From the IMG/VR virus record IMGVR_UViG_3300020442_000005, positions 124,001 to 188,000 of that record: a stretch of DNA of 64,000 bases. The stretch is one strand, 5' to 3'. Of the stretch, positions 8,445 through 54,960 are shown piece after piece. A model generated the notes under the pieces. It did no database searches. It was not told the DNA's origin and worked only from the letters and a program-made list of their open reading frames with translations. Both the position numbers and the translations under genes were made by a program. Numbering within the stretch: position 1 is the stretch's first letter; each line of letters starts with the position of its first letter.

Positions 8445-8753
8445 ATGAAAATATCAAAAAGACAACTTAAAAGAATTATTAGAGAAGAAAAGGCCCGAAT
8501 CCTTGAAGAAACCAAGTCCTTTGACCGATCGGACGCTCACTACGTTGGCGGCGTAAAAATGACTGGACCAGGCGCTGATACTATTTTTGGCACAAAAAAG
8601 CGTGACGATAGATCGATCGAAAACAAGATCATGAGTATGGGCCCAGAACAACACCGCGATCTGATTGCTTTTATCTTTGAAAAAGCGCAATATACCTTAG
8701 GGCTTGACGGATTAGAGGATGCGATTGCAGAAGCTATGGATAAATTACGATAA
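8445..8753 (+). CDS. Leader-family protein (MKISKRQLKRIIREEKARILEE), putative internal head protein
   Basis: Shared N-terminal leader; unique C-terminus. Confidence 0.75.
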   Translation: MKISKRQLKRIIREEKARILEETKSFDRSDAHYVGGVKMTGPGADTIFGTKKRDDRSIENKIMSMGPEQHRDLIAFIFEKAQYTLGLDGLEDAIAEAMDKLR

Positions 8754-8763
8754 GAGTTAGAAA

Positions 8764-9174
8764 GTGAAAATTACAAGAAAACAGTTACGGTATATTATCA
8801 AAGAAGCTACTCGAAAAGGAAAATCTAAAAAGAGAGGTTTCAAGATAAAATTTGATATGGGTGATAAACTGGTGTGTCCTCACAGCCCAGAATCAATGCC
8901 AGCTGGTTTCGCTCATCCTCAAGGTCTTTCTGGTGTTATAAAACGAAAAGAAGTCTCGCGGGGTAAAGGTATCATGTACTATAAGCTTATCATCGGTGGA
9001 AAGACTTTTGAGGGCGAGTTTAGTGGTTATGGATATGCTTCACGCGGTATTGACGATTTTGGTCCATTTTCCATGAGACTTAAACAAGAACACCGAAACA
9101 TTCCAATGCCGTTGCATGAACCTCAAATAGTATTCGCCTGGGCAAATGGTGATTTAAAAATTTTTGATGTATAG
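8764..9174 (+). CDS. Leader-family protein (MKITRKQLRYIIKEA) with a possible SH3/KOW-like cargo
   Basis: GTG start; shared leader; FDMGDKLV followed by beta-rich sequence. Confidence 0.7.
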   Translation: MKITRKQLRYIIKEATRKGKSKKRGFKIKFDMGDKLVCPHSPESMPAGFAHPQGLSGVIKRKEVSRGKGIMYYKLIIGGKTFEGEFSGYGYASRGIDDFGPFSMRLKQEHRNIPMPLHEPQIVFAWANGDLKIFDV

Positions 9175-9185
9175 TGAGAAAAATA

Positions 9186-9581
9186 ATGAAAATTACAAAA
9201 AGACAACTTAAAAAAATTATTAAAGAAGAATACTCGCGGTTAAAGCAACAGGGTCTGATTACAGAAACGAGGATGTCATCAGGCAGATTAATTGTTAGTC
9301 AAGTTAATCAGCTTAAGCAAGCATATTTTATTCTAGATCCTGAAAGAAATTACGATCGGCAGTCTATAATAGAACAACAAAAAGTAGTTGAAAGACTTAA
9401 ATCAGAAATGAATCCACGAGATTTTAAAATTGCATCACGGATGGCAGATATATATGTTGAATACTTAGGAACTGATTTTGGAGGCGGTGGCAGGATGACG
9501 CCATACGAAGAGGCGTTGTTTGACGAGGCCGAAGCGCTTGGATCTAAGATTGGTGTATCTGCTCAAGTATTATTCAGGTAA
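9186..9581 (+). CDS. Leader-family protein, long leader (MKITKRQLKKIIKEEYSRLKQQGLITE)
   Basis: Start reassigned from 9174 to the ATG at 9186, where the leader begins. Confidence 0.75.
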   Translation: MKITKRQLKKIIKEEYSRLKQQGLITETRMSSGRLIVSQVNQLKQAYFILDPERNYDRQSIIEQQKVVERLKSEMNPRDFKIASRMADIYVEYLGTDFGGGGRMTPYEEALFDEAEALGSKIGVSAQVLFR

Positions 9582-9591
9582 GGACACCAAA

Positions 9592-9816
9592 ATGAAAATT
9601 ACAAAAAGACAGTTAAGACAGATTATCAAAGAAGCTACAAGCAAGGACCGGCTTGATTACGAGGCAGGTATTGACATGGGTTTTTCTGATTACAATAGAG
9701 ATATTAGAGATCGTGATTTATCAAAGCATAGTGAATCATTTCGCAAAGGCTATAGATATGGCTATAGCCAAGCAATGCGAATGGCTCAAGACTTTGATGA
9801 TGGTAATCCGTACTAA
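9592..9816 (+). CDS. Leader-family protein (MKITKRQLRQIIKEA) with a short Y/G-x-x-x-G-repeat cargo
   Basis: Start reassigned to ATG 9592 (SD AAGGA); contains DYEAGIDMGF and FRKGYRYGY. Confidence 0.75.
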   Translation: MKITKRQLRQIIKEATSKDRLDYEAGIDMGFSDYNRDIRDRDLSKHSESFRKGYRYGYSQAMRMAQDFDDGNPY

Positions 9817-9825
9817 GAGACTTTC

Positions 9826-10386
9826 GTGAAAATTACAAGACGTCAGATTAGACATGTTATCATGGAAGCATTACAACCAAAAATGTTACCTGATGGTTGG
9901 AAAATGCAGATACATGCTGGTGATTCTCTAAGTGCTGAGGGTCATTCTTTACTAGTGGTCCTTCTAAACAGTAACGGAAGAACTATAGGAAAAGTCGGCG
10001 CTGATAGGCATTGGACCGATAACCGTTGTATTGCAGACGTGTTTGAGGTTACAGGATCTGAAGTTCGTGGTGGTTATGGACCAACACTATATGATGTTGC
10101 AATAGAGTGGGCAACACTGAATGGTCTTGGATTGGTAGCAGACCGCTCAGGTGTGTCTGCAGAAGCAGAAAGAGTATGGCAAAAATATCTTACAGCCAGG
10201 CCCGATGTATCAGCTCACCGGTTACCTGATGGATATTGTGTTGGGCCCGAGGCAGAGTATGGCGGCGGAGAATGGTATCTTCACAGATACACAAAAGAGG
10301 AAAACCTAATTCCTGCTATGGCTAGATTTGGTCAGCTAGAAATAATATATGACGATGAAATTGAGGACATGAATCTGTACATGTAG
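9826..10386 (+). CDS. Leader-family protein (MKITRRQIRHVIMEA) with a GNAT-like acetyltransferase cargo
   Basis: Acetyl-CoA-binding-like motif EVRGGYGPTLYDVAIEWA followed by VSAEAERVWQKY. Confidence 0.6.
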   Translation: MKITRRQIRHVIMEALQPKMLPDGWKMQIHAGDSLSAEGHSLLVVLLNSNGRTIGKVGADRHWTDNRCIADVFEVTGSEVRGGYGPTLYDVAIEWATLNGLGLVADRSGVSAEAERVWQKYLTARPDVSAHRLPDGYCVGPEAEYGGGEWYLHRYTKEENLIPAMARFGQLEIIYDDEIEDMNLYM

Positions 10387-10399
10387 TCCTTAAATTAAT

Positions 10400-10428
10400 T
10401 TATAAAAACAAAATATATTTGGTATAAT
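10400..10428 (+). promoter_or_regulatory. Sigma70-like promoter TTATAA-N17-TATAAT
   Basis: Exact 17-bp spacing; same class as the 12 other sites in the window. Confidence 0.6.
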
Positions 10429-10447
10429 GTCTGCGTAACCAATAATT

Positions 10448-10509
10448 ATGATTAAGCCCCTAGCATGGACATAAGGCGGACCCCACACGCTCGCTAGGGA
10501 ATCATGTGG
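10448..10509 (+). ncRNA. Candidate structured 5' leader RNA
   Basis: Nested stems ATGATT/AATCAT and CCCTAGC/GCTAGGG; the GC-rich loop contains CCACA, complementary to downstream TGTGG. Confidence 0.45.
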
Positions 10510-10545
10510 ACAAGTAATCTCAAACAAACTTTAAGGAGAAAAATT

Positions 10546-11049
10546 ATGCCAAAAGTAATCGTAACCGATACCAAGGGACTTCATCAAGTTACCGGTACAG
10601 GTGTTGAAGGCTTGGAAGCCATTAAATTTAGTAGCAAAATTGCAGTTGGAGTTACCCAAACAAATTATGATACAGCAGCAATTTCAATTCCTGCGAATGC
10701 TCTGATCACTGATTTGGGTTATATTTGTGTCGACGCGCTTGATGCAAATACATCCACAACATTGACTTTCTCATTTGGTACCGCAGCTGGAGGCGCTCAG
10801 TTAGTGACCGCAACACAGCTTAACCAAACAAATACTGATATCGCTGCAGGCGTTACACAGTCAATTCAGCTTGGAAACATACCTCACGCATCAGGTGCGG
10901 CGATTCCTTATAAGGCTGGTGCTGCATATTTTAGCGCAACTGCAAGAGACATATTCATGCGTGTAACCGTTGGTGGCGCTAACATGTCGAATGCCGGATC
11001 AGTTATTGCTTTTGTTAAATACTGTATAGTGCCAAGCGCATCATTGTAA
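10546..11049 (+). CDS. Putative capsid decoration/structural protein (beta-sandwich-like)
   Basis: Start reassigned to ATG 10546 (SD AAGGAG). Ala/Thr/Gly-rich with ISIPANALITD; lies between the capsid and neck genes. Confidence 0.55.
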   Translation: MPKVIVTDTKGLHQVTGTGVEGLEAIKFSSKIAVGVTQTNYDTAAISIPANALITDLGYICVDALDANTSTTLTFSFGTAAGGAQLVTATQLNQTNTDIAAGVTQSIQLGNIPHASGAAIPYKAGAAYFSATARDIFMRVTVGGANMSNAGSVIAFVKYCIVPSASL

Positions 11050-11071
11050 TAGAACAATAAAGTAACAACAT

Positions 11072-11104
11072 GCCACCCTTCCTTGATTGGTTGGGTGGTT
11101 TTTG
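11072..11104 (+). terminator. Probable rho-independent terminator
   Basis: GCCACCC...GGGTGGT followed by Ts. Confidence 0.7.
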
Positions 11105-11173
11105 TTAGATTTTATAAAAGTAAAACATACTTATAAAAGATAGCGTTTAATATACTCAGAACAGGAGAGAGAA

Positions 11174-11449
11174 ATGGCTACATCAAAAAAGACAACTAAG
11201 GCTGAGACCGTTGCTGCTCACGGACACGCTGAGCTCGAAGCAAAAGTCGCTGGATTAGAAAAGTTAGTTGCAGAACTTAAAAAAGAATTAAAAGAGCATT
11301 GCGCAAAATCCGAAAAAGAACATAAGGCTTTAGCTGACAAGTGTGATGCATGCTGCGAAGCAAAAGTTTCTGCTAGTGCTGCTGATCCGCGGGTTGATGC
11401 AATGTGGAAATGGCTGAGAAAAGACCGAATTTTCCGCTCAGAAAACTAA
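11174..11449 (+). CDS. Small coiled-coil protein with a Cys cluster (CDACC)
   Basis: SD AGGAG; late-type motif at 11127. Confidence 0.65.
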   Translation: MATSKKTTKAETVAAHGHAELEAKVAGLEKLVAELKKELKEHCAKSEKEHKALADKCDACCEAKVSASAADPRVDAMWKWLRKDRIFRSEN

Positions 11450-11482
11450 TAATAATCACCAGCCATGTGTAAACAATACAGG

Positions 11483-11522
11483 ATATCGGCCATAATGGCC
11501 GATATTTTTTTTTATTTTTTTT
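11483..11522 (+). terminator. Rho-independent terminator
   Basis: Perfect inverted repeat ATATCGGCCAT-A-ATGGCCGATAT followed by long T runs. Confidence 0.85.
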
Positions 11523-11646
11523 AATTTAGGTTAATGGCGTGTGGCGTGTAAGTTTTATTGGTGAAAGTTTATCCTAATAGAAACTAGTTCAAGGTTGTTT
11601 GGGTTTTATACACATAATTATAAACGAACATGAACGGAGATAAAGC

Positions 11647-12819
11647 GTGGCCACATTTACAAACACAGTAGATCCAACTCCTTTTGGGATATTTGATTCT
11701 GATACAGATTTTCAATCCGATGCAGATTCAATGATTACATTTGTAAAAAGAAAGCTAGGTGATGACGTCCTAAGCGTTGAGTTGACCTCCAAGCAAATAT
11801 GGATGTGTTTTGAGGAATCTGTTTTCGAATACAGCAAATACATAAACGAGTATATGACTAAGTCGCAGCTTGGTAATCTTATGGGAATGGCAACCGGCTC
11901 TCTTTCCGGTTCAGAAAATAAATTACCTCGAGAGACATTAGAGTTTCTTATGCGAAAAGCCGAACCGTATGCTTCGCACGCGGCACTCGGAGGGTCTCAC
12001 AACATAATCTCCGGATCTATTACGTTAACAGGATCCCAGCAAGACTATGATATCCATACAGATCTTCTTAATGGAGACGGCGATTCAATATATTCCGCAC
12101 AATCCGCTGGCTCAAAAACAAAACTTCGTATATTTGACATTTATCATTTTTCAGCTCAGGCAGCTTATAGATTTTTTGATACAACGTCTGCTATAAATTA
12201 CTTGAATAACGAGTTTTCTTTTGAGTCTTTTACTCCGGAAACTGTGTTCTATGTCCTGCCTGTATTTGAGGATGTATTACGACAACAGCAGATGGATACA
12301 TCTAACAGAGTGCGAAGATCACAGTATACCTACGAACTGATAGGCACAAAACTACGCATATTTCCAAAGCCAACTGCACGAGTTAATGGCCAAAAGCTTT
12401 GGGTGCGCGTAGGATATGCTATGGATGGTCTAAATCCAGCATATCAAGATGATACTATTTTTGGGGTATCGGGACCACAAAACGTACCATTTGGAAATAT
12501 TGAATATGCAAAAATTAATTCAATGGGCAAACAGTGGATCCGCCAGTTTACTTGCGCATTGGCAAAAGAAGTGCTAGGGCAGGTTAGAGGAAAATTCGGA
12601 TCTGTGCCAATACCCAATGGCGACGTATCGTTAAACGGTGGCGACCTAAAATCAGAGTCTTCAAGCGAACAAGAACGATTACGCACGGAGTTAAAAGAAA
12701 TGTTAGATGGTCTCACGTACGACAAGCTGCTTGAAGCACAAGCAAATGAAGCTGAGACATTGACAAGATTGTTAAAGTTAGTTCCTATTCCATTCGGTAA
12801 GTCAATAATGATAGGATAG
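11647..12819 (+). CDS. Neck/head-completion protein, gp13-like
   Basis: Motifs FVKRKLGDDVLSVELT and WIRQFTCALAKEVLGQVRGKFGSVPIPNGDVSLNG. Confidence 0.85.
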   Translation: MATFTNTVDPTPFGIFDSDTDFQSDADSMITFVKRKLGDDVLSVELTSKQIWMCFEESVFEYSKYINEYMTKSQLGNLMGMATGSLSGSENKLPRETLEFLMRKAEPYASHAALGGSHNIISGSITLTGSQQDYDIHTDLLNGDGDSIYSAQSAGSKTKLRIFDIYHFSAQAAYRFFDTTSAINYLNNEFSFESFTPETVFYVLPVFEDVLRQQQMDTSNRVRRSQYTYELIGTKLRIFPKPTARVNGQKLWVRVGYAMDGLNPAYQDDTIFGVSGPQNVPFGNIEYAKINSMGKQWIRQFTCALAKEVLGQVRGKFGSVPIPNGDVSLNGGDLKSESSSEQERLRTELKEMLDGLTYDKLLEAQANEAETLTRLLKLVPIPFGKSIMIG

Positions 12820-12829
12820 GAGACTATAC

Positions 12830-13474
12830 ATGGCAAGATTATTTATAACAGCAAGAGAAATCGATTTTATTTCTGACATAACAAAAGAACTTACAAAAGA
12901 TATAATCGGTCAAGTGATATACTACTACAAACCTCGTGTAGATTTATCAAATTCCAACAACGTATATGATGAAATGACGGAAAGGGTGTTTGATCCACCA
13001 GTAGAAATAGATTGTACGGTTCAATGGAATCCATCGGAAAAAACAACGGATCGATATGGCCACCAGTCGCTTTCATCAATTGAAATATATCTACACTATC
13101 GAGATTTATTAGACCGTGGACTAGTCGTTGAGGAGGGTGATTTCTTTCAATTCGGCGACACATTCTACGAAATGACGACCGTCAATCGTGATAAGATTAT
13201 GTTTGGACAAGTTGAACATATAACCGGTTACAAAATAGTTGCCAAGCAAGCAAGAAAAGGACTGATTGATAAACCTGTTAACGGACCAACCGGTGAGCAA
13301 TTTACAGATGCCGGATCCGTGCAAGATACATTCGCACAACAGCGCGGTGACGTATCTAAAGGTGACAAAAGACAACTGGTGTCTGATGGTGTACTAGATA
13401 GCCCGATCGGAAACGCTCAGACGGTACGAAAGGACGGTAGTGCAAAGTCTTCATTCTATGGAGATGAATCATGA
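12830..13474 (+). CDS. Neck/head-closure protein, gp14-like
   Basis: Follows gp13; motifs VYDE...FDPPVEI and VEEGDFFQFG. Confidence 0.75.
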   Translation: MARLFITAREIDFISDITKELTKDIIGQVIYYYKPRVDLSNSNNVYDEMTERVFDPPVEIDCTVQWNPSEKTTDRYGHQSLSSIEIYLHYRDLLDRGLVVEEGDFFQFGDTFYEMTTVNRDKIMFGQVEHITGYKIVAKQARKGLIDKPVNGPTGEQFTDAGSVQDTFAQQRGDVSKGDKRQLVSDGVLDSPIGNAQTVRKDGSAKSSFYGDES

Positions 13475-14631
13475 TATACAAGAATCAAAAAATAGACGCA
13501 GCATTATACAATGTCGAAGACTTTCAAGAACTTCCATCTTGTGGTGTTGAAGATCTAGATAAGGCCGTATACGATTTGTTTGCAAATAAGCTTCCATTTT
13601 ATTATCGAACAAAAGATACTCAGAAAAGAATGCCGGCAATATTTGCTTCTGGTGAACGTGCGGTCATGTTAAAAAAGAGGCGTGCACTAAGAGATAACAC
13701 AGGGGCTTTAATCTTACCGGTTATATCCGTGCTTAGAACAGGCTTAGAGCAGGATCCTGAGGGATACGGACTTACTCCAACCGGCGATGAAATTATTATT
13801 AAGAAAAAAATATATAAAAATAACGCTGAATATAAAAGAGAAAAAAACTTTGAGGGATTGCGAAACGCTGACTATACTATAAAAGAAGAGGTTTTAAACG
13901 GTCATTTTTCTAAAAGAGAATATTACCTTGGAGACAGTTATCCATCCATCAGAAAGAATACAAATAATATATGTGAATATTACACAATGCCTGTACCCAG
14001 GTTTTTTAAATGTACATACGAAATTACTTTCTGGTGTCAGTTTCAAACACAGTTGAACAATGCCTTAGAAGCTTTGATGGATTTCTATAACACTCCTGCA
14101 CGCGCATTTATGCTGGAGTCAGAAAAAGGATACAAGTTTACAGCAAACATCGATGGTGCGATAAGCCAAGATAACAATACCGACTCTTTGACTGACACAG
14201 AAAGAATTGTAAAAGCATCAATCACTCTCAACAGTTATGGGTACATAATTAATCCGGATTACCCAGGTTCTGTTTCTTCTATAAAGAGATACGTCACGCA
14301 GCCAAAAGTTGTTTTTGAGACAAATATAGGCACAGTACCCACTATTTTAAAATCTTCTGGGTTAACGAGCAATGATCCTAATAATTATGTAGAGGAAGAT
14401 TGGGCCAATGAATTTGACAATTTACCAGGCTCAGGACTAGGTACCACGGTTTTGAACACAGAAAATGAGGCGGATGTGACAATAGGAACCACTAATAAAT
14501 TAGTTACAAATCGATACGTGTTAGAAACAAAAGATCCAAATACAGGAAAAGTTACAACCGAAGAATATATTATCAAAGATGTTAATAAAAGAAACGGTGA
14601 AATTGTGTTAAGACAAATAAGGGTTTTATAG
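13471..14631 (+). CDS. Tail terminator/sheath stabiliser, gp15-like
   Basis: Lies before the sheath; motifs PAIFASGER, LILPVISVLR and YEITFW...QLN. Confidence 0.7.
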   Translation: MIYKNQKIDAALYNVEDFQELPSCGVEDLDKAVYDLFANKLPFYYRTKDTQKRMPAIFASGERAVMLKKRRALRDNTGALILPVISVLRTGLEQDPEGYGLTPTGDEIIIKKKIYKNNAEYKREKNFEGLRNADYTIKEEVLNGHFSKREYYLGDSYPSIRKNTNNICEYYTMPVPRFFKCTYEITFWCQFQTQLNNALEALMDFYNTPARAFMLESEKGYKFTANIDGAISQDNNTDSLTDTERIVKASITLNSYGYIINPDYPGSVSSIKRYVTQPKVVFETNIGTVPTILKSSGLTSNDPNNYVEEDWANEFDNLPGSGLGTTVLNTENEADVTIGTTNKLVTNRYVLETKDPNTGKVTTEEYIIKDVNKRNGEIVLRQIRVL

Positions 14632-14674
14632 TCCAGAAAACATATTTAATAAAGAACAATAGGAGATTATTCAA

Positions 14675-17600
14675 ATGGCTGAACAAACATTCAAAAGTGC
14701 AGGTTTTTTCGATTTCGAAACAGAAATAAGCCGGTCGACGTCAGCAGCATCAGGAGTTCCGCTCGCTGTTATCGGTACTGCAGAAAAAGGCCCTGCTTTC
14801 AACCCTGTTTATTTTGGTTTGCCCGCTGGCGCTTCAACAGTTGGAGAGCAGCTGCGCAACTTTACCGAAAAATTTGGAAGTATCAGTCCCACACAATTTG
14901 GTCCATATGCTGTTAAAGCTTGGTTCGAACAGGGAGTGAGTTTTTCAAACATTACTAAATCTTGTCAATACCTTCGTGTTCTTGGTGCCGGTGCTAACTC
15001 ACAGCCTGGCGACTTCACAAACACCGGAACATACGGAATAGTTAAGTCTGCCGGGTTTAAGGTTAATCACCCTAATCCTTTTGCGTTGCTCGACGGTGCA
15101 GGAGGGCCATCAGTTAGTGGCGATCACCGTATTACTCACGGTGGCCAAAGATCAGTTCCAGGTACAACATATTTCTTGGCAGCAAGACATGAAGTACCAG
15201 CTACATCGGACACAGCGCTTCCACACTTTACTGATAACGATTCATTTAAGGGCGTTTCGTCCTCTGGTGCAGATGACGTTAACCTCATTAGAGCAATGAT
15301 TTTCACGCCAACTGGATCTGCATTATTAGTGGCTGACTATGATTCCGTTAATATTGAAACTCCAACAAATGGTATTGGCGCAGGAATTTTTGCAGCTGGA
15401 CAAGCTGGTTTGGCTTCTGGATCGGTTTCAACTAAATCAACTAGTTTATTTAAGCTGCTTGTTTCATCATCTGACGGAGCTACATTTGCTACAACCGATG
15501 GAAATGCTGGAGTTAAAATATTTACATGCTCATTAAATCCAGATGAAGATGAATATATCGGAAACGTTTTGAATACGGATCCACTTCTCATGGCTTCTCA
15601 AGGACATTATCTATACATTGATTGGCCTGTAACAAACGTTGTTGCTCCGGTAAAAACTGATATCTCTACGATTGCTTTATTGTCAGGATCTTCAGAAGAT
15701 CCAGGTGTTGGACTGTCAGCAGCTGATGATGTACCGGCAACGTTGTTAAACCAGTATCAAAACATGTTTGGAAGATTTGATACAAGATACAGTACTGCAA
15801 AAACACCGTACATCATTTCACAACCATTTGGAAAAACAGAGCATAACTTGTTTTACTTTGAAAATCTTTCTGACGGTGCCGCTGGAAACACAAACTATTA
15901 TATATCGATAGAAAACGTAAAAGCATCAACAGACCCAGCCAATTTGTATGGAACGTTTGACGTTGTTCTTCACTCATTTCCCGATACTGCTGGAGCAACA
16001 TCAATTCTAGAACGTTACTCTAGAGTAAGCCTAAATCCGGATGCTAAAAACTATATCGGTAAAGCAATCGGCGATTTCAAATCAACATACAACTTTGATA
16101 CTACTGTAGATAAAAGAAGATTCTCTAACTCTGGTGCAAATCCATTAAAATCTAACAGAATCCGAGTTGTCGTTGCTGAGAGTGTAAAAAGAAAATTGAT
16201 TCCACCGATTGCATTGCCATTTGGTTTCCGTGGTATTCCTACAATTAAGACATCGCCATCCATAAGAGATTGTGGTTCAGCCTCAGACGCTGAAGCGGCT
16301 GTTACAGAAAACATCGCCTTGGGTGACGTACCAAGGCTTGCACCGTTCTTTACCGGTTCGATTGCTGATTTTGCTGCCAATGATATAAAGGTAAAAGCCG
16401 GTCTGACCGGTTCGATTGTGCCTCCATTGCCTTTCCGGTTTAAGCAAGCTAAAACAGGTGACCTTAAGTCATCTCCTTCGTTTATTGGTCAGCCTGGTCC
16501 TCAAACTGCGACAGATGCAACATTGAACTGGGGCGTGCAATTTGAAAACCAAAGATCTGAGACAAAACCTTGGGAAGCAGGCAGTGCTGACTTGGATCGA
16601 ACAAACGGTATTATCAAATCATATGCTAAGTTTCAGGGTATCTCAAAGCTAAACACCGTTTATACCGGATCAGCTGTAGATAAATTTAATAACAATAAGT
16701 TTACGTTAGCAAGAGTTGCGCTAGTAAATCAGTTAAATGCTACTAACCCGTTACAAGACATCACCGGTTCGGCTTCCGATCATATCAAAGATGCAGCATA
16801 CATTCGTAACGGCGTGGTCGATGGTGCTGACTATACTGTATATGATAGAGTGCTCGATGGTGATCGTATATCACTTGCAACGCTGTTAGCAAAAGATAAA
16901 AAGAAATACAACAAGTTTTCTTCATATGCCAAGTTCAATACTATATTTTATGGTGGATTTGATGGTTTAAATATTTTTGACCGCGACGCGTATGAAATGA
17001 ACGATAAAGCTAGCTCAACAGAGGCTGGCGGCTTTGCTCGTGACATTGTCGGAGGAACCGGAATCACAGGTTCTGATAACGGCACTCTTATGGGTAAGGG
17101 AATAAACAACAGTATTATTCAGTCATACCGTTCAGCAATCGATATTATTAATGATCGATATCAGTCAATACACCACATATTGAACATTCCAGGTATACGT
17201 GAACCATTAATCACCGATTACGCTTCTGAAAGAACAGAAGATTATCAAATGGCCATGTATGTAATGGATATTCCAAACTACGATGAATCTGGTAACCGAC
17301 TATTTATTGACAGTACCGTTGTTCCATCTGTTGTTAAAACTGTAAGCAAGTTTGAGGCAAGAGACTTAGACAATAGTTATACTGCGACATATTTCCCAGA
17401 TGTAATAATCGACGATCCAATTAACGGTAATCGAAGAACAGAAGTTCCGGCATCGATCGCCGCTGTGACTGCATACTCCTACAGTGATTCATCAAAAGGT
17501 GGCTCTGTATGGTTTGCACCAGCTGGTTTTGACAGAGGTTCTTTGAGCCCGGTTAAAAATACAACAGTACGCCTGACGACACTAGACCGTGACGATTTGT

Positions 17601-18022: not shown

Positions 18023-18042
18023 GAATAACAGGAGAAACTTAA

Positions 18043-22264: not shown

Positions 22265-22278
22265 TTTCCACTATTAAT

Positions 22279-45683: not shown

Positions 45684-45706
45684 TTAATAACAATGGAGTT
45701 ATTCGT

Positions 45707-46171: not shown

Positions 46172-46172
46172 A

Positions 46173-46574: not shown

Positions 46575-46951
46575 TGAAAATTACAAGAAGAAAATTAAAG
46601 CAGATTATCGAATCCGTTATGAACGAAGCTGTTCAAGATCCAGAATATGACAGAGAATATGACCTTGTTCAAAATAACATTAAAACACAACGTGGTTTTC
46701 TAGGATTTGCAATGCGAAGTTTGGAATCTAGTTATGGAAATCGATTTTATAATCATGGAAGGGGCAACATTGGAATATATCTTACACTTATAGGACAACA
46801 CGTAAGAGATGGACAAGACTCAAGAGGTGGCACCGTCGAAGGTCATATCGCATCAATAGAAGGCAAGCTCGCAGAATATCCCGATCTTCTCACACCAGCA
46901 GGGCGAGGACGACTGGATGCGTTGCTGGACCACTTAAAACAAAACTATTAA
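46574..46951 (+). CDS. Leader-family protein (MKITRRKLKQIIESVMNEA)
   Basis: Start reassigned to the TAATG overlap at 46574. Confidence 0.75.
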   Translation: MKITRRKLKQIIESVMNEAVQDPEYDREYDLVQNNIKTQRGFLGFAMRSLESSYGNRFYNHGRGNIGIYLTLIGQHVRDGQDSRGGTVEGHIASIEGKLAEYPDLLTPAGRGRLDALLDHLKQNY

Positions 46952-46965
46952 TCAGGGGAAAACGA

Positions 46966-47232
46966 ATGAAAATTACAAGAGCAAAATTAAAGCGGATTAT
47001 TCGTGAAGAAAAAGCACGCATTTTCGAGATGCATCACGGGCGTCCTCATGGAGATTTGGATAGTCTCGTTGAAGACACTCTTGAATATATTTCAGATGGT
47101 GCCTTTTCTAATGGTATGCAGATAGTACAATATGTTCGAGATGCAGGTCGCGATTATGGCCTTTCTGCAAGTGATCAGGATAAAGCAATTGCAAGAATTA
47201 TTAACGGTATGATGGCTGGCCCAAGATTTTAG
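46966..47232 (+). CDS. Leader-family protein (MKITRAKLKRIIREEKARIFE)
   Basis: Shared leader; small helical cargo. Confidence 0.75.
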   Translation: MKITRAKLKRIIREEKARIFEMHHGRPHGDLDSLVEDTLEYISDGAFSNGMQIVQYVRDAGRDYGLSASDQDKAIARIINGMMAGPRF

Positions 47233-47241
47233 GAAAATAAA

Positions 47242-47757
47242 ATGAAAATATCAAAAAGACAGCTTAAGAAGATAATACAAGAAGAATACATCGCCTTGAA
47301 AAGACAGGGTTTAATTACTGAATACGGTCTTGGCGATGAGTTTGACGGAATGCGCAATCCAGGCAGACGTGCACAAGATAGATCTATACCCGGAAGTATT
47401 GCTCGGGTTGATTGGATTAAACTCCACCATGACCCTTATTATGATAATAACCCACCAGAATGGCTCGGAAACCCAAAAGAAGAGTTGGATGCATTCCTTG
47501 ACTTAATAATTTCTGCCGAGCTTGAGAATGTACTGGATGGCTTAGGAATGTCAGAACTATATAGACCAGCGATGGATGAGATCGACTACGAAGGAATTTT
47601 CCACGGCGGCAAAACAATCATGAAAATACTTGAAAATGTTTTTCCTTATTCTGATGGTTCATATTTATACAGAGCCTTAGAAAGATGGGCTGCTGAGCAT
47701 ACAAGTTCAGGAAAAATACATTCTGGCGAAATCCGGTATACCCAGCCGCAGAGATGA
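47242..47757 (+). CDS. Leader-family protein, long leader (MKISKRQLKKIIQEEYIALKRQGLITE)
   Basis: Shared leader; unique cargo. Confidence 0.75.
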   Translation: MKISKRQLKKIIQEEYIALKRQGLITEYGLGDEFDGMRNPGRRAQDRSIPGSIARVDWIKLHHDPYYDNNPPEWLGNPKEELDAFLDLIISAELENVLDGLGMSELYRPAMDEIDYEGIFHGGKTIMKILENVFPYSDGSYLYRALERWAAEHTSSGKIHSGEIRYTQPQR

Positions 47758-48161
47758 TAAACGTAATGAGCAAGATATTAACAAAAGCCTTTTGGGATTC
47801 TGTATGGAATTGGTGTAAGATCAACTGGAAATTTCTTGTTGGTTTTGCAATACCCTGTATTTTGCTGATTGCGGTTAATAGACGTAAGGCATTCAAGTTG
47901 CTTGAAAAAGGCATTGAGTTCCGTAATCAACAGTTAGATGTAGCACAGAGAGCTTCGGATCTCGAGTCCGATGGGAAGGTCAAGAACGCTAAGGAATTTG
48001 CTGATCGTGTAGAGGAGGTGACAACCAGACACGAGGAGGCTCTTCGCAAGCTTGGTGAAAACGTCCAAGACCGGCGTGAAGAATTGGGTGGGTCTGATGC
48101 TGCTGTTGTAACGGACGCTTTGGCGGATCGCTTTAATTTGAAGAATGGAGACAACAAGTGA
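47754..48161 (+). CDS. Membrane-anchored coiled-coil protein, possible i-spanin
   Basis: N-terminal TM segment (FLVGFAIPCILLIAV) followed by a coiled coil; near the endolysin. Confidence 0.45.
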   Translation: MINVMSKILTKAFWDSVWNWCKINWKFLVGFAIPCILLIAVNRRKAFKLLEKGIEFRNQQLDVAQRASDLESDGKVKNAKEFADRVEEVTTRHEEALRKLGENVQDRREELGGSDAAVVTDALADRFNLKNGDNK

Positions 48162-48835
48162 ATGCTAAAAAACTAAGAAAAATTATCGCTGAAGAGTTAG
48201 CGGTTATCTCAAAATCAGCAATTGACGACACTGTAATGAATATTCTAAGTGATGAAGGTGGCGCAGCTGGACTCGATCCAATCGAAAAAGCTTTAAAAGA
48301 TTTAGAAAACGATCAGATGGAACTTCCGGAAGAAAGTATCGAAGAATTAATATCAAGTGTTGCAGGCGTTAAACGCCATCGCGATGGTGACTATATAGAC
48401 ACAACTCAACTTGAAGGAAAAGCATATTTTACAAAACGCAGATTAAATCAGATAGTCAAAGAAGAATACAAACGCTTAAAGGATGAGGGACTAATATCAG
48501 AAACCTTTAAAAGTAAGTCAACTTTTGGCGGCAGATCCCCAGAATATAAAATGCGAATGCCTAAGTTGTACGGTACACAAATGCAAGATGCAAGACGGGG
48601 TAACCGACTACCACCAGAAAGTTCAAATTGGTTTAGATTTGCAAAACATTTGGATATCGGTATACTAGATCTAGATGAAGTAGCACATGAACTTCGTTTT
48701 AAAAATTTTGAACACATGGACGCAGCTGTGTCACCACGTGGTCTAAATCAATCAGAAGCTGATCGAGTTGCTGATATAATGTATGATTTATACATGATTG
48801 AAGATATCGATGTATACGACGCTTTGGAGAAATAA
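48158..48835 (+). CDS. Leader-family protein with two leader copies
   Basis: N-terminal MNAKKLRKIIAEE and internal FTKRRLNQIVKEEYKRLKDEGLISE. Confidence 0.7.
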   Translation: MNAKKLRKIIAEELAVISKSAIDDTVMNILSDEGGAAGLDPIEKALKDLENDQMELPEESIEELISSVAGVKRHRDGDYIDTTQLEGKAYFTKRRLNQIVKEEYKRLKDEGLISETFKSKSTFGGRSPEYKMRMPKLYGTQMQDARRGNRLPPESSNWFRFAKHLDIGILDLDEVAHELRFKNFEHMDAAVSPRGLNQSEADRVADIMYDLYMIEDIDVYDALEK

Positions 48836-48838
48836 AAA

Positions 48839-49366
48839 ATGAGTATATCAAAAAGAGAAATCAGGCGAATAGTAGAAAAATCATCTTGTGGTCGGCGCCG
48901 TGTACGAGAAATGGACGATGCGGCACCTGGAATCGGTACGTCATACGAAGACGTTCGTGAACTAGCCAAGTATCACGCTCTTAATGGCGACAAAGACCAA
49001 ATGCTTTATCGCGATAACCCTGATTACAAAGATGCATATGATGAAATGACAATGAAGGAATCTAAAATAAATTTACGACTTAGAACAAAAATTAGACGTC
49101 TTACCGAATCGATGAAAAACCTTTACGGTGACATACAGAATGAAATACTGTATATTGGCCAAGAGCAGGGCGGTGAAATAGTTGTGCAAGATGTCGTTGA
49201 TTATTTGCAAAATTATGCAAATGACCCATTGGGAGATCCGCGAGCTGATTATGTTAGTAGCATGCCATATGAAGAAGTACGGCAAATAATGTTTGATATG
49301 GTTGACGCCGGAATGCTTACCGATGGCTATGAAGATTTCTTCTATGTCCATCCGGACTACATGTAA
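48839..49366 (+). CDS. Leader-family protein (MSISKREIRRIVE) with an internal leader-like segment and a winged-helix-like C-domain
   Basis: Internal LRTKIRRLTES; C-domain IQNEILYIGQEQGGEIVVQDVVDYL. Confidence 0.65.
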   Translation: MSISKREIRRIVEKSSCGRRRVREMDDAAPGIGTSYEDVRELAKYHALNGDKDQMLYRDNPDYKDAYDEMTMKESKINLRLRTKIRRLTESMKNLYGDIQNEILYIGQEQGGEIVVQDVVDYLQNYANDPLGDPRADYVSSMPYEEVRQIMFDMVDAGMLTDGYEDFFYVHPDYM

Positions 49367-49416
49367 TATGCGGCTGCAGGCCCGTTAGAGACTGCAAAAT
49401 ATAAAAGGAAATAAAA

Positions 49417-50313
49417 ATGGCTGTTGACAAAGAGTTTTATAACGAAGCATCGGCTTCAAAGCTTGGCTGGGAACCTGAATGGTTTATTCCCGGCCATAAT
49501 CTTTTTGATAAAAAATTAACAAAAGCTATCAAAGAATGGCAAACCACACGTGGTCTGTATGCTGACGGCATGTGCGGACCTGGTACGTTTCGACATATCA
49601 ATGCTGAAATAGAATCACAGCGTGAGCTAGACGCTTTAGGTTGGGTATCAGATTCTTCAGATGTAATTTGGTGGGGAGATAAGCCCATAAAGATCGACTG
49701 GCCTTCTAACAAGGTACACACGTTTAAGGATGAAGGTTTTCCTTATCCTATTAGCAAGGGCGTTACAAAAAACTCTCGTAAAAGAAAGATTAATTCTTTC
49801 GTGACGCATTGGGACGTATGCCTTAGTTCCATGAGCTGCGCAAAAGTTCTAGCCAAGCGTAATGTATCCGTGCATTTCTGTATTGACAACGATGGCACGA
49901 TCATTCAGCTTCACGATCTTAATGACTCTTGTTGGCATGCTGGCAACAGCAAAGTAAACCGTACAAGTGTCGGCGTTGAGATTTCAAACGCATATTATCA
50001 AAAATATCAAGGATGGTATAAAAAGAACGTAGGTAAGGAAAGACCAATCATGTCTGGTGCGTTAGCACAGAATAAACCTCTTAAAGACTTTACTTGGTTC
50101 TACCCAGAACAGATTGAGGCTCTTAAAGCCTTATACAAAGCAATCCACGAGGGATGTGATGTGCCTCTTCAGTCTCCGGCAAATAAGTGGGCTTTCGATA
50201 GCTCGGCAGCTGGTGGAAGCTGGAAAGGTTTTATGAATCACTTTCACTGTTCAAAAAAGAAGATTGACTGTGGTGGATTAGATATTGAAAAACTTTTAGA
50301 AGAAATTAAATGA
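49417..50313 (+). CDS. Endolysin: peptidoglycan-binding domain plus N-acetylmuramoyl-L-alanine amidase (Amidase_2)
   Basis: Motifs AIKEWQTTRGLYADGMCGPGT, THWD, SVHFCIDNDGTIIQ, CWHAG, SVGVEI and NHFH...KIDCG. Confidence 0.88.
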   Translation: MAVDKEFYNEASASKLGWEPEWFIPGHNLFDKKLTKAIKEWQTTRGLYADGMCGPGTFRHINAEIESQRELDALGWVSDSSDVIWWGDKPIKIDWPSNKVHTFKDEGFPYPISKGVTKNSRKRKINSFVTHWDVCLSSMSCAKVLAKRNVSVHFCIDNDGTIIQLHDLNDSCWHAGNSKVNRTSVGVEISNAYYQKYQGWYKKNVGKERPIMSGALAQNKPLKDFTWFYPEQIEALKALYKAIHEGCDVPLQSPANKWAFDSSAAGGSWKGFMNHFHCSKKKIDCGGLDIEKLLEEIK

Positions 50314-50885
50314 AAATTACAAGAAGACAACTAAGAAGAATTATCAAAGAAGCAAGTGCTTCGTACGGTGAAAGATTGTATCGCGATATTGTTGGACACG
50401 AATTCCAACCGGATTATGTGTATCGACCGGTCCAACAGATGATGGGCCAGGCCCAACCTCAAAATCTAATAAAGTATCGTTCAGTCAACGAGGTAATGAA
50501 AGCAATTGCAAATTACTATCGTAAGAAATATGGACCAGATGATGCAAAAGCTTACATTCGTGCTAATCCAACCATTATAGATTTTTTAGAAAATGATTCT
50601 GAAGCTTTAAAAAGTATGCATCCCAGACGTTTTGGAGGAGATTCGTTTGGAAGACCTGGAATCTTATATTACAGCCCCTCTGAAATTAGCCTTTCATGGG
50701 GTAACGTGGATGCAGTTGCTGAGGCTGGTCAAGATTTCCAACGGCTCCCGGGAGACCTTGCACAGATTGCAGAACAATTATACAATGAAGATCGATTACT
50801 TCCCGCGTTTTTACACTTGATCACCGGTACACAGCCAAGAAATCATGTCAATCGCGCCAATGGTTACGGAAGTATTTCAAACTAA
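50310..50885 (+). CDS. Leader-family protein (MKITRRQLRRIIKEA)
   Basis: ATGA-type overlap with the endolysin stop; shared leader. Confidence 0.75.
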   Translation: MKITRRQLRRIIKEASASYGERLYRDIVGHEFQPDYVYRPVQQMMGQAQPQNLIKYRSVNEVMKAIANYYRKKYGPDDAKAYIRANPTIIDFLENDSEALKSMHPRRFGGDSFGRPGILYYSPSEISLSWGNVDAVAEAGQDFQRLPGDLAQIAEQLYNEDRLLPAFLHLITGTQPRNHVNRANGYGSISN

Positions 50886-50902
50886 TAAGGAAGATAAACA
50901 AA

Positions 50903-51760
50903 ATGAAAGCAAACTCTGCGCGCAAGTTAAGACATTTGGTTCGTCGTATCATCGTAGAATCACAAAGCTTGGATAATCAGATTCTCAGTAGATCTGATTA
51001 TATGCGTGGATTGATGTTATTTATTGAAAATAACCCGGGAACTACTACAGACGAAATGTTTGATTCTCCGGTTGCAAATGCAATTATTCCAATTGGTATA
51101 AGAGAAAGAGCAATATTGCTTTGGGTAAAGAAGCTAATCAAGGATGGTTTTATTATTTCAAAAAGATATAGGCTTTATTCAACTGGCAAAGCAGATTATG
51201 TAAATCACAATGTTGTTTTAGAAAACGTTATTATGGAAAGCGCCAAGTTCTCAAGTTATGATGCTTTCACAAGACAGGAAAATCTTGACCTTCGAATGAT
51301 GGAACATGATAAAGGTCATATCGATCTAGAAAACAATTCTGCAATTGCGAAAGCTTTTCAAGTATATTCGGAAACAACAACAGTTTCTTTGTTTCGCGGA
51401 ATATACAACACCGAAACACGGATGCTTTCAAATATGCAGCCAGGCGACACATTCCAATTTGGTCGTGTAACTTCACTATCAGAAAACTTTGAAATTGCAA
51501 AAAAGTTTGCAATAAATAAAAAAATCGTTGAGCTAGTACCAGGCACGAAAGGTTGTTTTAGTTTTGTCGATTTTCTGGTCGACTACTATGATGGATGGAA
51601 GCGAAAGGATCCTATGGACTACGAAATGCAGGATGGTGAATGGCGCAAAGGATCGGCGGAAAGAGAGGCCGAATGGTTCGTATCCGGGGATACACAATTT
51701 CAGCTTTTAGACGTTGCAGAAAGAGATGGAATGACCGTGTACAAGATCAAAACTCTTTAA
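50903..51760 (+). CDS. Leader-family variant carrying a winged-helix-like domain and an ADP-ribosyltransferase domain
   Basis: Leader RKLRHLVRRIIVES. R-S-E ART motifs: LFRG, VTSLSEN..IAKKFA and EREAEW. Confidence 0.65.
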   Translation: MKANSARKLRHLVRRIIVESQSLDNQILSRSDYMRGLMLFIENNPGTTTDEMFDSPVANAIIPIGIRERAILLWVKKLIKDGFIISKRYRLYSTGKADYVNHNVVLENVIMESAKFSSYDAFTRQENLDLRMMEHDKGHIDLENNSAIAKAFQVYSETTTVSLFRGIYNTETRMLSNMQPGDTFQFGRVTSLSENFEIAKKFAINKKIVELVPGTKGCFSFVDFLVDYYDGWKRKDPMDYEMQDGEWRKGSAEREAEWFVSGDTQFQLLDVAERDGMTVYKIKTL

Positions 51761-51768
51761 AATAATAC

Positions 51769-51797
51769 GTATAAATACTCTTACTAATGGTTATAAT
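51769..51797 (+). promoter_or_regulatory. Promoter GTATAA-N17-TATAAT
   Basis: 17-bp spacing; upstream of the methyltransferase. Confidence 0.65.
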
Positions 51798-51820
51798 AGA
51801 GAAAATCATTAGGAGTTTTT

Positions 51821-52786: not shown

Positions 52787-52797
52787 ATGGAGTCAAA

Positions 52798-53550: not shown

Positions 53551-53608
53551 AAATAGAGTTTTCTTTTGTTGTGCGTTGCGTATCTACATTTATTTTAGGG
53601 GATATCCT

Positions 53609-53932
53609 ATGACCGGTGATAATAATGGATGGAATGAATATTCACGTATGGTTTTAAAAGAGCTCGAAGTATTGGCCGCTGGAATCAATGGCTTAAAAAC
53701 AGAAATCGAAGGTTTAAAACGTGAGATTACAGAGATGAGAGCAAGAGAAGACAAAGTTTCAGAATTGGTTGATTGGAAAAAAAGAGTCGATGAAGTCGCG
53801 TCACCATCTCAATTGAGAGACTTACAGGACCAAGTATCAGCTCTTCAAGACTTTAAAATAAAGGCAACCACAGCATTTATTGCAGCCCAGATGGTCGTTG
53901 CAGGTGCTTTTACATTGTTAAAGCTAATCTGA
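53609..53932 (+). CDS. Coiled-coil protein with a C-terminal TM segment (possible lysis/holin-like)
   Basis: Start reassigned to ATG 53609; C-terminal hydrophobic AFIAAQMVVAGAFTLL; late-type motif at 53543. Confidence 0.5.
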   Translation: MTGDNNGWNEYSRMVLKELEVLAAGINGLKTEIEGLKREITEMRAREDKVSELVDWKKRVDEVASPSQLRDLQDQVSALQDFKIKATTAFIAAQMVVAGAFTLLKLI

Positions 53933-53982
53933 CACATACTTATATACTGAAATGCTAAATCGATATTTTTAAAGGAGCTATC

Positions 53983-54279
53983 ATGAGAATATCAAAAAGA
54001 CGCTTACGCATGATTATTAAAGAAGAATATACAAAACTTAAAAGACAAGGGTTGTTGAGTGAATCTAGATTCAGCAGCAGAGGATCTTCGTCTAGATTAA
54101 CAGTATCTCAGCTCAGAAGACTGATCAGAGAAGCGCTCGATGAAGAAGATGATTCTGAAGAGGAAGATGATAAACCAGGTCCGGGTGAGGACGCTGAGGG
54201 CCGAATGGGTGCTGGTGATCCTAAAAACGCAAAGAAAAACCCAAGAAAGAAAAAACCCAAAGCGCAAGACATGAGATAA
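53983..54279 (+). CDS. Leader-family protein with a tandem double leader
   Basis: MRISKRRLRMIIKEEYTKLKRQGLLSE followed by RLTVSQLRRLIREALDEE; late-type motif at 53936. Confidence 0.75.
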   Translation: MRISKRRLRMIIKEEYTKLKRQGLLSESRFSSRGSSSRLTVSQLRRLIREALDEEDDSEEEDDKPGPGEDAEGRMGAGDPKNAKKNPRKKKPKAQDMR

Positions 54280-54301
54280 ATCCTTCAATCCGGAGAAACC
54301 A

Positions 54302-54652
54302 ATGAGAATATCAAAAAGACATCTTAAAAGAATCATCAAAGAAGAATATACAAAATTAAAACGCCAAGGACTTATTAGTGAAGGTTTTCGCGATATGCGC
54401 GGTGGCCATGGCCGTCAAATGAGCTTGCAAGATTACGAAGAGCAAGACCCAAACATGATGGAAGACAATTATGACGCTGCAGTGGAAGAGTGTATGGCTG
54501 CTATTCCAGGAATGATGAAAAAGATTATTTCAATGGGAATGGGACACACTGTAATGAATGACATTTATCATATCTGCGCGCCAATCTGCAAAAGCTACGG
54601 CGTTGATGCTGACGAAGTTTCAGAAGAAATTATGGAAAGACTTGGATACTAA
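54302..54652 (+). CDS. Leader-family protein, long leader (MRISKRHLKRIIKEEYTKLKRQGLISE)
   Basis: Shared leader; SD GGAG. Confidence 0.75.
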   Translation: MRISKRHLKRIIKEEYTKLKRQGLISEGFRDMRGGHGRQMSLQDYEEQDPNMMEDNYDAAVEECMAAIPGMMKKIISMGMGHTVMNDIYHICAPICKSYGVDADEVSEEIMERLGY

Positions 54653-54654
54653 AG

Positions 54655-54960
54655 ATGAAAGTGACCAAGAGACAGATAAAGCGTATTATTCGTGAAGAAT
54701 ACAATAAGATGCGTAGAGAACAGCGTATTGTTACTGAAAGCTATTTTAAAAACCTTTTAGTAGAAATAGAGGATCATCTTTTGTATTTGGCTGACATGCA
54801 TGCCGGTAGTGTACCTATTGAAAAGGTTGTACGGCCATTAAAAAGAAAGTTTAAGCATTTCTCTGGAATGACAAGGGCTACAGTTTTTGCAGAGCTTATG
54901 GAAATGCAGCCCTATTTTAGCGTGATACGGATTGATGGTGACAACATAATTTCTTACTAA
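54655..54960 (+). CDS. Leader-family protein (MKVTKRQIKRIIREEYNKMRREQRIVTE) with a winged-helix-like cargo
   Basis: Shared leader; helix-G-strand-helix-helix-hairpin pattern in the cargo. Confidence 0.72.
   Translation: MKVTKRQIKRIIREEYNKMRREQRIVTESYFKNLLVEIEDHLLYLADMHAGSVPIEKVVRPLKRKFKHFSGMTRATVFAELMEMQPYFSVIRIDGDNIISY

Follow-up and report, generated by a model that had tools for sequence, protein, structure and literature searches.

Why would a phage begin more than a dozen unrelated proteins with the same short peptide? The question is raised by a stretch of 64,000 nucleotides (the window) that corresponds to bases 124,001-188,000 of the 273,025-bp contig IMGVR_UViG_3300020442_000005. 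The source is an uncultured marine phage, a far-T4 jumbo myovirus. An earlier note on this DNA had described a family of genes whose products share an N-terminal leader, with unrelated "cargoes" behind it, and had suggested that the leader sends these proteins into the phage head, as the capsid-targeting sequence (CTS) of phage T4 does. We put a probability of about 60% on a reading of this kind: the leader would be a capsid-targeting propeptide like that of T4, the cargoes would be packaged and cut free by a protease of the S77 family, and the enzymes among them would be ejected with the DNA. Below, window genes are referred to by the coordinate of their first base; all of the plausible genes lie on the + strand.

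Thirteen + strand genes encode the 14-residue N-terminal consensus M-K-I-(T/S)-(K/R)-R-Q-L-(K/R)-x-I-I-(K/R)-E. In each of the 13 cases that the earlier note had called clear, the leader does begin at the coordinate given there, at the first codon of an open reading frame, and a purine-rich stretch that resembles a ribosome-binding site lies 5' of it. When we scanned the window in six frames with a profile of the first 16 residues, the 13 leaders scored 25-33 bits and the next-best match scored 11.5 bits. A degenerate DNA pattern with up to 2 mismatches has 10 sites, while 0.00 were expected from 100 dinucleotide-preserving shuffles.

Five of these genes follow the major capsid gene. They are 8445-8753 (102 amino acids, leader MKISKRQLKRIIREEKARILEE, with a cargo family that is conserved in marine metagenomes), 8764-9174 (136 amino acids, GTG start, basic cargo), 9186-9581 (131 amino acids, with an extended leader that ends in GLITE), 9592-9816 (74 amino acids; 39.7 bits with a leader profile built from 371 sequences), and 9826-10386 (186 amino acids, GTG start, with a probable GNAT-fold cargo from a very large family). 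A second cluster (46173-50885) includes 46173-46574 (133 amino acids, extended leader ending in GLINE), 46574-46951 (125 amino acids; its start overlaps the stop of 46173), 46966-47232 (88 amino acids), 47242-47757 (171 amino acids, extended leader ending in GLITE), and 50310-50885 (191 amino acids; its start overlaps the stop of an amidase gene). The last three are 53983-54279 (98 amino acids, with a second leader-like copy at residues 42-56 that scores 17 bits), 54302-54652 (116 amino acids, extended leader ending in GLISE), and 54655-54960 (101 amino acids).

The earlier note also listed five variants, which we scored with the 371-sequence profile. Two of them are supported. The 225-residue protein of 48158-48835 has a weak N-terminal leader (10.3 bits) and a clear internal copy at residues 92-109 (15.7 bits; the feature spans residues 92-115, or about nt 48431-48502). 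The 285-residue protein of 50903-51760 scores just -0.7 bits and is nevertheless backed by comparison with its family: it has a diverged leader, RRIIVE↓S (the arrow marks an actual or predicted cut), then a domain of about 95 residues, a leader remnant, and an ADP-ribosyltransferase (ART) module. The other three are weak: 37205-37546 (MLLTESSLRRIIRRALIE↓A, 8.2 bits), 48839-49366 (MSISKREIRRIVE↓K, 6.2 bits), and 2392-2838 (3.3 bits). This gives 13 certain leaders, two supported ones, and three weak ones.

Similarity stops after the leader, as had been claimed. With blastp of residues 16 to the end, we found only an extension of the leader (EEYxxLKxQGLIxE, common to 9186, 46173, 47242, 53983, and 54302) and one weak relationship between cargoes (48839 and 54655, 29% identity over 76 amino acids, E = 1.5e-5). 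In profile-profile comparisons of three cargo families, the columns that align are the 15-24 columns of the leader only. Pfam and PHROGs gave no family for any of the 18 listed leader and variant proteins; sub-threshold matches of 53983 to MRP-S28 and of 9592 to phrog_34053 were judged to be due to chance.

The leaders were said to end in (I/L/V)-x-E, and this is borne out by 197 leaders that were found by the profile only and are therefore free of the bias of our search pattern. Among these, I12 and E14 are each 91% conserved (90-91% for L8, I12, and E14 taken together), and across leader sets the ranges are 91-96% for I12 and 91-97% for E14. The leader has a net charge of +4 or +5 and is predicted to form a basic amphipathic helix of roughly 14-22 residues. 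Past about residue 22, the sequence is variable and rich in Gly, Asp, Glu, Ser, and Pro. The AlphaFold2 model of the 8445 protein has a leader helix at residues 5-23, low confidence at residues 19-51, and helices at the C-terminus, which suggests a small helical protein.

Selection acts on the peptide and not on a DNA cassette, because the DNA upstream is unrelated and identical residues differ in their codons. The 30 nt upstream of the leader genes have just 32% identity to one another, and 35% of the pairs of identical leader residues are encoded by different codons. We also considered that the conservation might be at the level of nucleic acid, as a recombination cassette or as a feature of translation initiation or of the mRNA at many gene starts. 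T4-type phages shuffle genes at conserved short sequences, and the A-rich codons of the leader (AAA, AGA, ATT) could favor initiation. However, an element of this sort does not account for the differences upstream and in codons, for leaders that lie inside proteins or at their C-termini, or for classes of leaders that share the hydrophobic/Glu pattern with different residues (see below). We find it scarcely credible.

What connects the leader to the phage head? The window encodes a T4-type virion module, with an S77 protease, a scaffold-like protein, a gp23-type capsid protein, a neck protein, two sheath paralogues, and a tail tube. The protease (1400-2011) is a prohead maturation protease of the T4 gp21 type, as the earlier note had proposed: it matches PF03420 (Peptidase_S77) with 94 bits (the cutoff is 27) and phrog_207 with E = 1.7e-49, it is 32% identical to T4 gp21, and His85, Ser140, and the Asp of GVDAV in the T4 enzyme are aligned with identical residues. 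It is the candidate for the enzyme that removes the leader.

The major capsid protein (6393-8372; gp23 type, phrog_138, E = 5.7e-73) has a predicted maturation site, VLRE56↓A. This L-(R/K)-E follows an ENQ motif, precedes a variable Gly/Ser-rich stretch and then a VRR motif, and is invariant in 78 of the 78 relatives whose N-terminus was recovered. T4 gp23 has LTE65↓A at the same place (its propeptide has 65 residues; PMC5694885), and the leader ends in I-(K/R)-E. The other relevant sites in the T4 genome are MKTYQEFIAE↓A in the internal proteins IPII and IPIII, a site ending in ITE↓A in IPI, and MELITE↓L in Alt (see also PMC5694885 and PMC9026906). As an aside, the capsid protein has 659 amino acids, and the gp23 profile and phage capsids match it in two pieces, one N-terminal and one at residues 368-641 (the best-scoring), which suggests a large insertion in the middle.

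Gene order in relatives points the same way. In seven of the 13 other leader loci with a homologue of the protease, a leader gene of class A, which is the class of the window, ends at the start of the protease gene. This is the slot of the T4 prohead-core genes 67 and 68, and the leader protein found there in sister lineages is rich in Gln, Arg, Ala, and Asp and looks scaffold-like. In the window, the head module includes 2392-2838, a conserved protein with a leader-like N-terminus (KRSVLKQLIKE↓C, which contains a LIKE motif, along with LVE↓I and LVE↓G); its orthologues keep this position in the L157/L096/L113 lineage as well as in L003, L004, and L009, and it is probably a prohead core protein. 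Together, the synteny in the sister lineages and the matching predicted site in the capsid protein uphold the claim that the leader is tied to head morphogenesis.

Directly upstream of the capsid gene, in the position of T4 gp22, is a gene (4606-6345) whose product we consider scaffold-like from its position and composition. It has a pI of 4.58, with 50-residue stretches of net charge -21 and -26, and its N-terminus contains KIIE↓S and LLIE↓Q; neither Pfam nor PHROGs has a match to it. The charges are as claimed, with an acidic scaffold-like protein (pI 4.6) and a basic leader. The motif [ILVM][IL][KR]E is present in six head-module proteins and in the leaders and occurs 7 times in the roughly 16,000 remaining residues, which is a weak enrichment.

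Besides the S77 head protease, the window encodes a ClpP-family protease (45063-45683; Pfam CLP_protease, 97 bits). Its gene is in the replication block, directly upstream of the second leader cluster, and N-terminal tags can serve as degrons. So the leader might be a tag for degradation or regulation by this enzyme or by a host protease, and might set the lifetime of each protein. This seems very improbable to us. Most of the leader loci that we examined have no phage ClpP: among the matches listed, ClpP homologues are in four of 120 leader loci, versus 14 with the S77 protease. No gene for an unfoldase or an adaptor was noticed beside ClpP, and both the head-module synteny and the Glu-ending motif suit the S77 enzyme.

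The leader is also modular. We searched a library of 1.84 billion sequences with the GNAT-like cargo of 9826 and obtained 2,492 representative clusters. Among 125 single-domain representatives, 73 have a second class of leader (class B, MxxLRxYIRxxLLTE), 29 have a third (class C, MKLLxENWRxFLxE), and 23 have others, including class-A-like leaders. Profiles for classes B and C have no match in the window. Despite these differences, 123 of the 125 have hydrophobic-x-Glu within the first 30 residues (with the Glu at position 14 or 15 in 84 of them); P3 is Leu, Ile, or Val in 122 of the 123, and P1', the residue after the Glu, is Ala, Gly, or Ser in 96.

Fusion proteins tell a similar story. In two-domain fusions (P0082, P0090, P0093, and P0094), the leader motif precedes each unit. 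An indel of 7 residues in the 8445 family takes out precisely a second unit, EEKARIL, which would be an optional second site. In other proteins, the first domain of 50903 follows a class-A-like leader (P0249-P0252) or lacks a leader (P0253 and P0254). The ART domain of 50903 is also found by itself, preceded by the class-B leader MKLLRETIRRILLE↓A, where 50903 itself reads NVIME112↓S; the Glu is invariant. Copies of the leader are also found inside proteins and at C-termini. The suggestion of a portable label therefore gains in strength: single cargo families come with different classes of leader, with none, or in fusions that are tagged at each junction. We also noticed a 930-codon stop-free frame at 6974-9766 (+) of L124 (IMGVR_UViG_3300007513_000001), in which a GNAT-like cargo follows IVRLLTE↓AAKGPQDLP and lies between other apparent domains. 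This could be one large fused protein or several genes that share the frame.

The leader is not peculiar to this phage. The leader pattern is present in at least 120 IMG/VR loci, which contain at least 416 profile matches of 14 bits or more, with up to 17 per locus; 410 of these are N-terminal, and the median protein has 109 amino acids. As the earlier note had expected of related genomes, the leader is conserved while cargo and copy number vary, and the content of leader cargoes varies strongly even between close relatives. Further copies are found elsewhere on the source contig (L112). Of 10 relatives by capsid gene on contigs of at least 100 kb, four (one of them the source contig) have leaders among the matches listed.

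In 596 Gb of bacterial and archaeal genomes, we found 13 stretches with leaders, all of them on contigs of metagenome-assembled genomes (MAGs) and none in isolates; one 306-kb MAG contig has at least 20 copies. L093, a contig labeled as a giant virus MAG, carries leaders as well, and it has phage-type ATPase matches and no hallmark gene; this contig is not a clear counter-example. We also searched cultured phages by tblastn, with two leader proteins and a GNAT-like protein of class B as queries, and obtained nothing relevant. A paper search found no match to the leader strings, and the CTS literature that it found concerned T4 and phiKZ-type phages only. The idea that this one phage had expanded a T4-like tag was too narrow in its scope, since the leader superfamily spans a large clade of uncultured marine phages. 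As for cultured relatives, the Flavobacterium phage vB_FspM_immuto_3-5A (L081) has two adjacent genes upstream of its terminase (2730-3731 and 3731-4030) with a common N-terminus, M(A/E)xNFxL(R/K)xFLxENKLT...LKE, and with remainders that differ, so this phage may have its own type of leader.

A dense example is L219, a relative on a 265-kb contig, where about 24 genes in an unbroken run of 29 start with leaders that intergrade between classes A and B, including the exact string MKITKRQLKRIIREEYDRLTRKGLLQE. At least 11 of the genes in this island are paralogues from the GNAT-like family.

What are the cargoes? Most of those in the window have no recognizable enzyme fold, and a search of the Atlas with the cargo of 50310 gave no lead. 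Two are more informative. We assign the C-terminal module of 50903 to the Mod/Alt family of T4 ADP-ribosyltransferases. R165, S191-x-S193, and E255-x-E257 are invariant in the family (A3 alignment), hhalign aligns the module to T4 ModB (probability 86%, E = 4.8e-6), homologues carry precomputed annotations as PF26816 (Mod_ADP_RT), and the Atlas also gave a lead for this protein. A local Pfam scan of the module had no match, and a profile of the family had no significant match among PDB sequences.

The cargo of 9826 is probably a GNAT-fold domain, going by its AlphaFold2 model (predicted local distance difference test, 72; predicted template modeling score, 0.73). When the model was compared to the PDB with Foldseek, the top matches were almost all GNAT acetyltransferases (E from 4e-4), with low template modeling scores of 0.28-0.45, and the lead from the Atlas agrees; Pfam has no match to this cargo. 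In the model, an invariant G-x-G-P-x-L-Y-D appears to occupy the helix that would correspond to GNAT motif A.

The proposal that the cargoes are a payload is partly supported by one concrete parallel, between the ART of 50903 and the packaged and injected Alt of T4. We also considered that the cargoes might be targeted to the head and cleaved there and yet be purely structural, as components of the core or inner body or as organizers of the DNA, with no injected effector. The phiKZ-like jumbo phages hold many paralogous processed inner-head proteins (PMC5694885, PMC9026906), the leader protein beside the protease in sister lineages is scaffold-like, and the scarcity of recognizable enzyme folds would fit as well. 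But purely structural cargoes would not be expected to include two enzyme-like domains, one of them in a family that includes T4 Alt and has invariant catalytic motifs, and the strong differences in content between close relatives are those of accessory genes. We regard this alternative as quite unlikely.

Our proposal for the role of the leader, as a propeptide that targets proteins to the capsid, is as follows. We infer that the leader proteins bind the core and are packaged, cleaved, and ejected; several indirect lines of evidence converge on this. During head assembly, the basic amphipathic helix of the leader would bind the acidic scaffold or core of the prohead, and the fused cargo would be enclosed. 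The S77 protease would then sever the leader on the C-terminal side of the Glu in I-(K/R)-E14. In many copies, it would cut a second time, at a hydrophobic-x-Glu a few residues on, and the cargo would be freed inside the head. The cargoes would then be a changeable set of internal head proteins, and the enzymes at least (the ART of 50903 and the probable GNAT of 9826) would be carried into the host along with the DNA, in the manner of T4 Alt and IPI.

Several observations weigh against this proposal. No cultured phage was found to carry the leader or these cargo families, so no virion proteome is available. Most of the second cluster is packed among genes for ribonucleotide reductase, ClpP, and replication or nucleotide metabolism, which are typical neighbors of early or middle genes. 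The residue after E14 is Glu in about two-thirds of class-A leaders, while the T4 sites listed above have Ala or Leu. Most cargoes are acidic (pI 4.3-6.5), while T4 proteins of the IP type are described as basic, with lysines that contact the DNA (PMC9026906, PMC3012670). In sequence, the leader bears no significant resemblance to the T4 CTS, and in the T4 record, ModA and ModB, which are the closest of the matched ADP-ribosyltransferases, do not have a CTS-like N-terminus. The AlphaFold2 helices of the leaders have only moderate confidence. Finally, the tagged genes of L219, many of them paralogues from one family, would be much to package.

Some of these observations would fit a different role, in which the leader is a helix that docks the proteins to a common partner outside the capsid (such as DNA or RNA, a host machine, or an oligomerization hub) and the hydrophobic-x-Glu is structural. 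A basic amphipathic peptide with a charge of +4 or +5 would suit such a role, and so would the surroundings of the second cluster, the run of tagged neighbors in L219, and the copies inside proteins and at C-termini; furthermore, cleavage of the leader is so far predicted from sequence. However, a docking helix leaves several findings unexplained. In sister lineages, a leader gene is directly 5' of the S77 protease gene; 2392, which is conserved in the head module, begins like a leader; and the end of the leader matches the L-(R/K)-E that is invariant in the capsid propeptide. Three leader classes of different sequence all retain Leu, Ile, or Val at P3, with Glu at P1 and then a small residue, and leaders are placed exactly at the junctions of fused domains. 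We consider it unlikely.

Internal head proteins would be made when proheads assemble, and the signals around the leader genes give hints on timing. An intrinsic terminator (8397-8431, +) separates the capsid gene from the first leader gene; its hairpin has a free energy of -24.3 kcal/mol (z = -3.2), and a U-run comes after it. Because it ends about 13 nt before the ATG of 8445, there is no room for a promoter, and the first cluster would be read through from the capsid gene. A candidate late promoter, CATA[AC]TTATA, has 31 matches overall versus 16.9 expected. It is found before start codons on the + strand at 4573, 10441, 11126, 11613, 21737, 37161, 53542, and 53935, mostly at structural genes. 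At a distance of 33-63 nt, it precedes 10504, 11174, the scaffold-like gene, the neck gene 11647, the tail-tube gene, 37205, and 53983. The matches at the two leader or variant genes are CATAATTATA (44 nt upstream of 37205) and CATACTTATA (48 nt upstream of 53983). This motif is unlike the T4 late promoter TATAAATA, which we rejected as the late promoter of this phage: it has just three + strand sites, none of them placed before structural genes. Scans with sigma-70 and terminator consensus sequences did no better than on shuffled sequences and missed the terminator after the capsid gene.

The overlap of 50310 with the stop of the endolysin-type amidase gene is a further hint on timing. For most of the second cluster, the evidence on timing is neutral, as the genes at 46173-48835 form a packed stretch behind ribonucleotide reductase and ClpP, which argues neither way. 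In four seawater metatranscriptome runs, we found contigs that are 90-99% alike to parts of the capsid gene (window 6000-8460), although carry-over of DNA is possible. These contigs come from relatives and cover just the conserved parts of the capsid gene, and 8464-10465 is almost empty; because the contigs are from relatives, this gap over the leader genes is uninformative.

Downstream of the virion module is a T4-like replication block with gp32, UvsX, an exonuclease, a DnaB-like helicase, ribonucleotide reductase, ClpP, Dam, ThyX, Fpg, MT-A70, and DNA polymerase. The nearest cultured phages by capsid protein, with 42-48% identity, are Flavobacterium phage immuto, Microcystis phage Mel-JY01, and Rhodothermus phage RM378. 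A near-identity DNA search with bases 1-20000 of the window against 50,697 phage records gave no match.

A few neighbors of the leader genes are of interest in their own right. The two sheath paralogues are adjacent and very long (14675-18022, 1,115 amino acids, and 18043-21741, 1,232 amino acids, both +), and sheath profiles match their C-terminal 300-400 residues only. The DNA polymerase (59843-63448, +; 1,201 amino acids) matches phrog_405 (E = 3.8e-225); by eye, its N-terminus looks like a PHP domain, as in the alpha type of polymerase III rather than the T4 gp43 type. In the middle of the head module, 4337-4555 (+) encodes a very basic 72-residue protein that is kept in the relatives L003, L004, L009, L157, and L096. 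It has a sub-threshold match to ribosomal protein S21 (PF01165, E = 0.006, 16.6 bits versus a cutoff of 27 bits), so it might be a phage-encoded bS21.

The leader genes 48158-48839 and 50310-50903 flank an amidase gene of the endolysin type (49417-50313, with Amidase_2 and PG_binding_1 domains), and 53983-54960 adjoin the gene for an Fpg/Nei DNA glycosylase (55027-55833). In the T4 genome, ipII and ipIII lie between denV, which encodes a DNA glycosylase, and e, which encodes lysozyme. The resemblance may be a coincidence.

How does the leader compare with known systems? In T4, the CTS of IPI, IPII, IPIII, and Alt is removed by gp21 (Mullaney and Black 1996, reviewed in PMC9026906, PMC3012670, and PMC5694885). 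The internal proteins of T-even phages are diverse, with the conserved CTS as their common element, and a CTS may be a general means of loading varied proteins (PMC3012670, PMC9026906). Like the T4 CTS, the leader is a short N-terminal peptide on small and otherwise unrelated proteins, with MK at its start and hydrophobic-hydrophobic-x-Glu at its end. As in T4, the genome encodes an S77 protease of the gp21 type, the tagged genes are scattered (some of them beside a gene for a cell-wall hydrolase), one tagged cargo is an ADP-ribosyltransferase like Alt, and the set of cargoes varies between relatives. Unlike the T4 CTS, the leader has no detectable homology to MKTYQEFIAE, is longer (14-22 amino acids), and is strongly basic. 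The window has 13-16 copies or more in its 64 kb, instead of three internal proteins and Alt, and there are at least three intergrading classes across a very large uncultured clade, with copies inside proteins and at fusion junctions. Also, most of the cargoes are acidic, unlike the T4 internal proteins, and the leader system is known here from genome sequence alone.

Jumbo phages of the phiKZ type (phiKZ, 201phi2-1, and SPN3US, whose S80 protease is related to gp21) are similar in that their jumbo heads contain many internal proteins, some of them paralogous. Their propeptides are cut after Glu, and there are conserved N-termini on the diverged paralogues gp53 and gp54 of SPN3US (PMC5694885). 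However, those propeptides mostly exceed 100 residues and have the motif S/A/G-x-E, whereas our leader is short, ends in I/L-x-E, and is accompanied by an S77 protease; and the capsid, sheath, and replication genes of the window are of the T4 type.

The T4 core and scaffold proteins gp67, gp68, and gp22 are like the leader proteins in their position beside the protease and in having multiple (I/L)-x-E sites, and T4 gp67 contains DLIKEEK. Leader genes in the sister lineages fill the slot of genes 67 and 68, and 2392 looks like such a core protein. The likeness is one of position and motif, not of demonstrated sequence homology, and most of the leader proteins of the window are encoded outside the head module, with no conservation from one relative to another. 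Relative to the T4 CTS, what is new is the distinct sequence of a longer and basic leader, the scale, the intergrading classes on the same cargo families, the leaders at fusion junctions, and the confinement to uncultured marine T4-like phages.

More broadly, the classes MKITKRQLRRIIKE (class A), MxxLRxYIRxxLLTE, and MKLLxENWRxFLxE, which intergrade, may form one superfamily that acts as an address label in a large clade of uncultured marine T4-like jumbo phages. The label would mark thousands of protein clusters, ARTs and GNAT-like enzymes among them, as proteins to be loaded into the head and delivered to the host. We offer this more tentatively, at somewhat less than even odds. If the capsid reading is wrong, there is still a very large and undescribed N-terminal motif family of marine phages that needs another explanation. 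If it is right, then genes that start with a leader in abundant ocean phages would flag candidates for internal or ejected proteins from the sequence alone, which would give a handle on the factors for host takeover and counter-defense that act in the first minute of infection by phages that cannot be cultured. In engineered T4-like systems, the short leader could also mark proteins for packaging and delivery. The principle of the T4 CTS, which serves three or four proteins in T-even phages, would have been extended to dozens of cargoes in each genome and to thousands of protein clusters, with several interchangeable classes of leader. The set of proteins that an uncultured phage injects would be readable from its genome, and whole 20-kb islands would be devoted to injected proteins.

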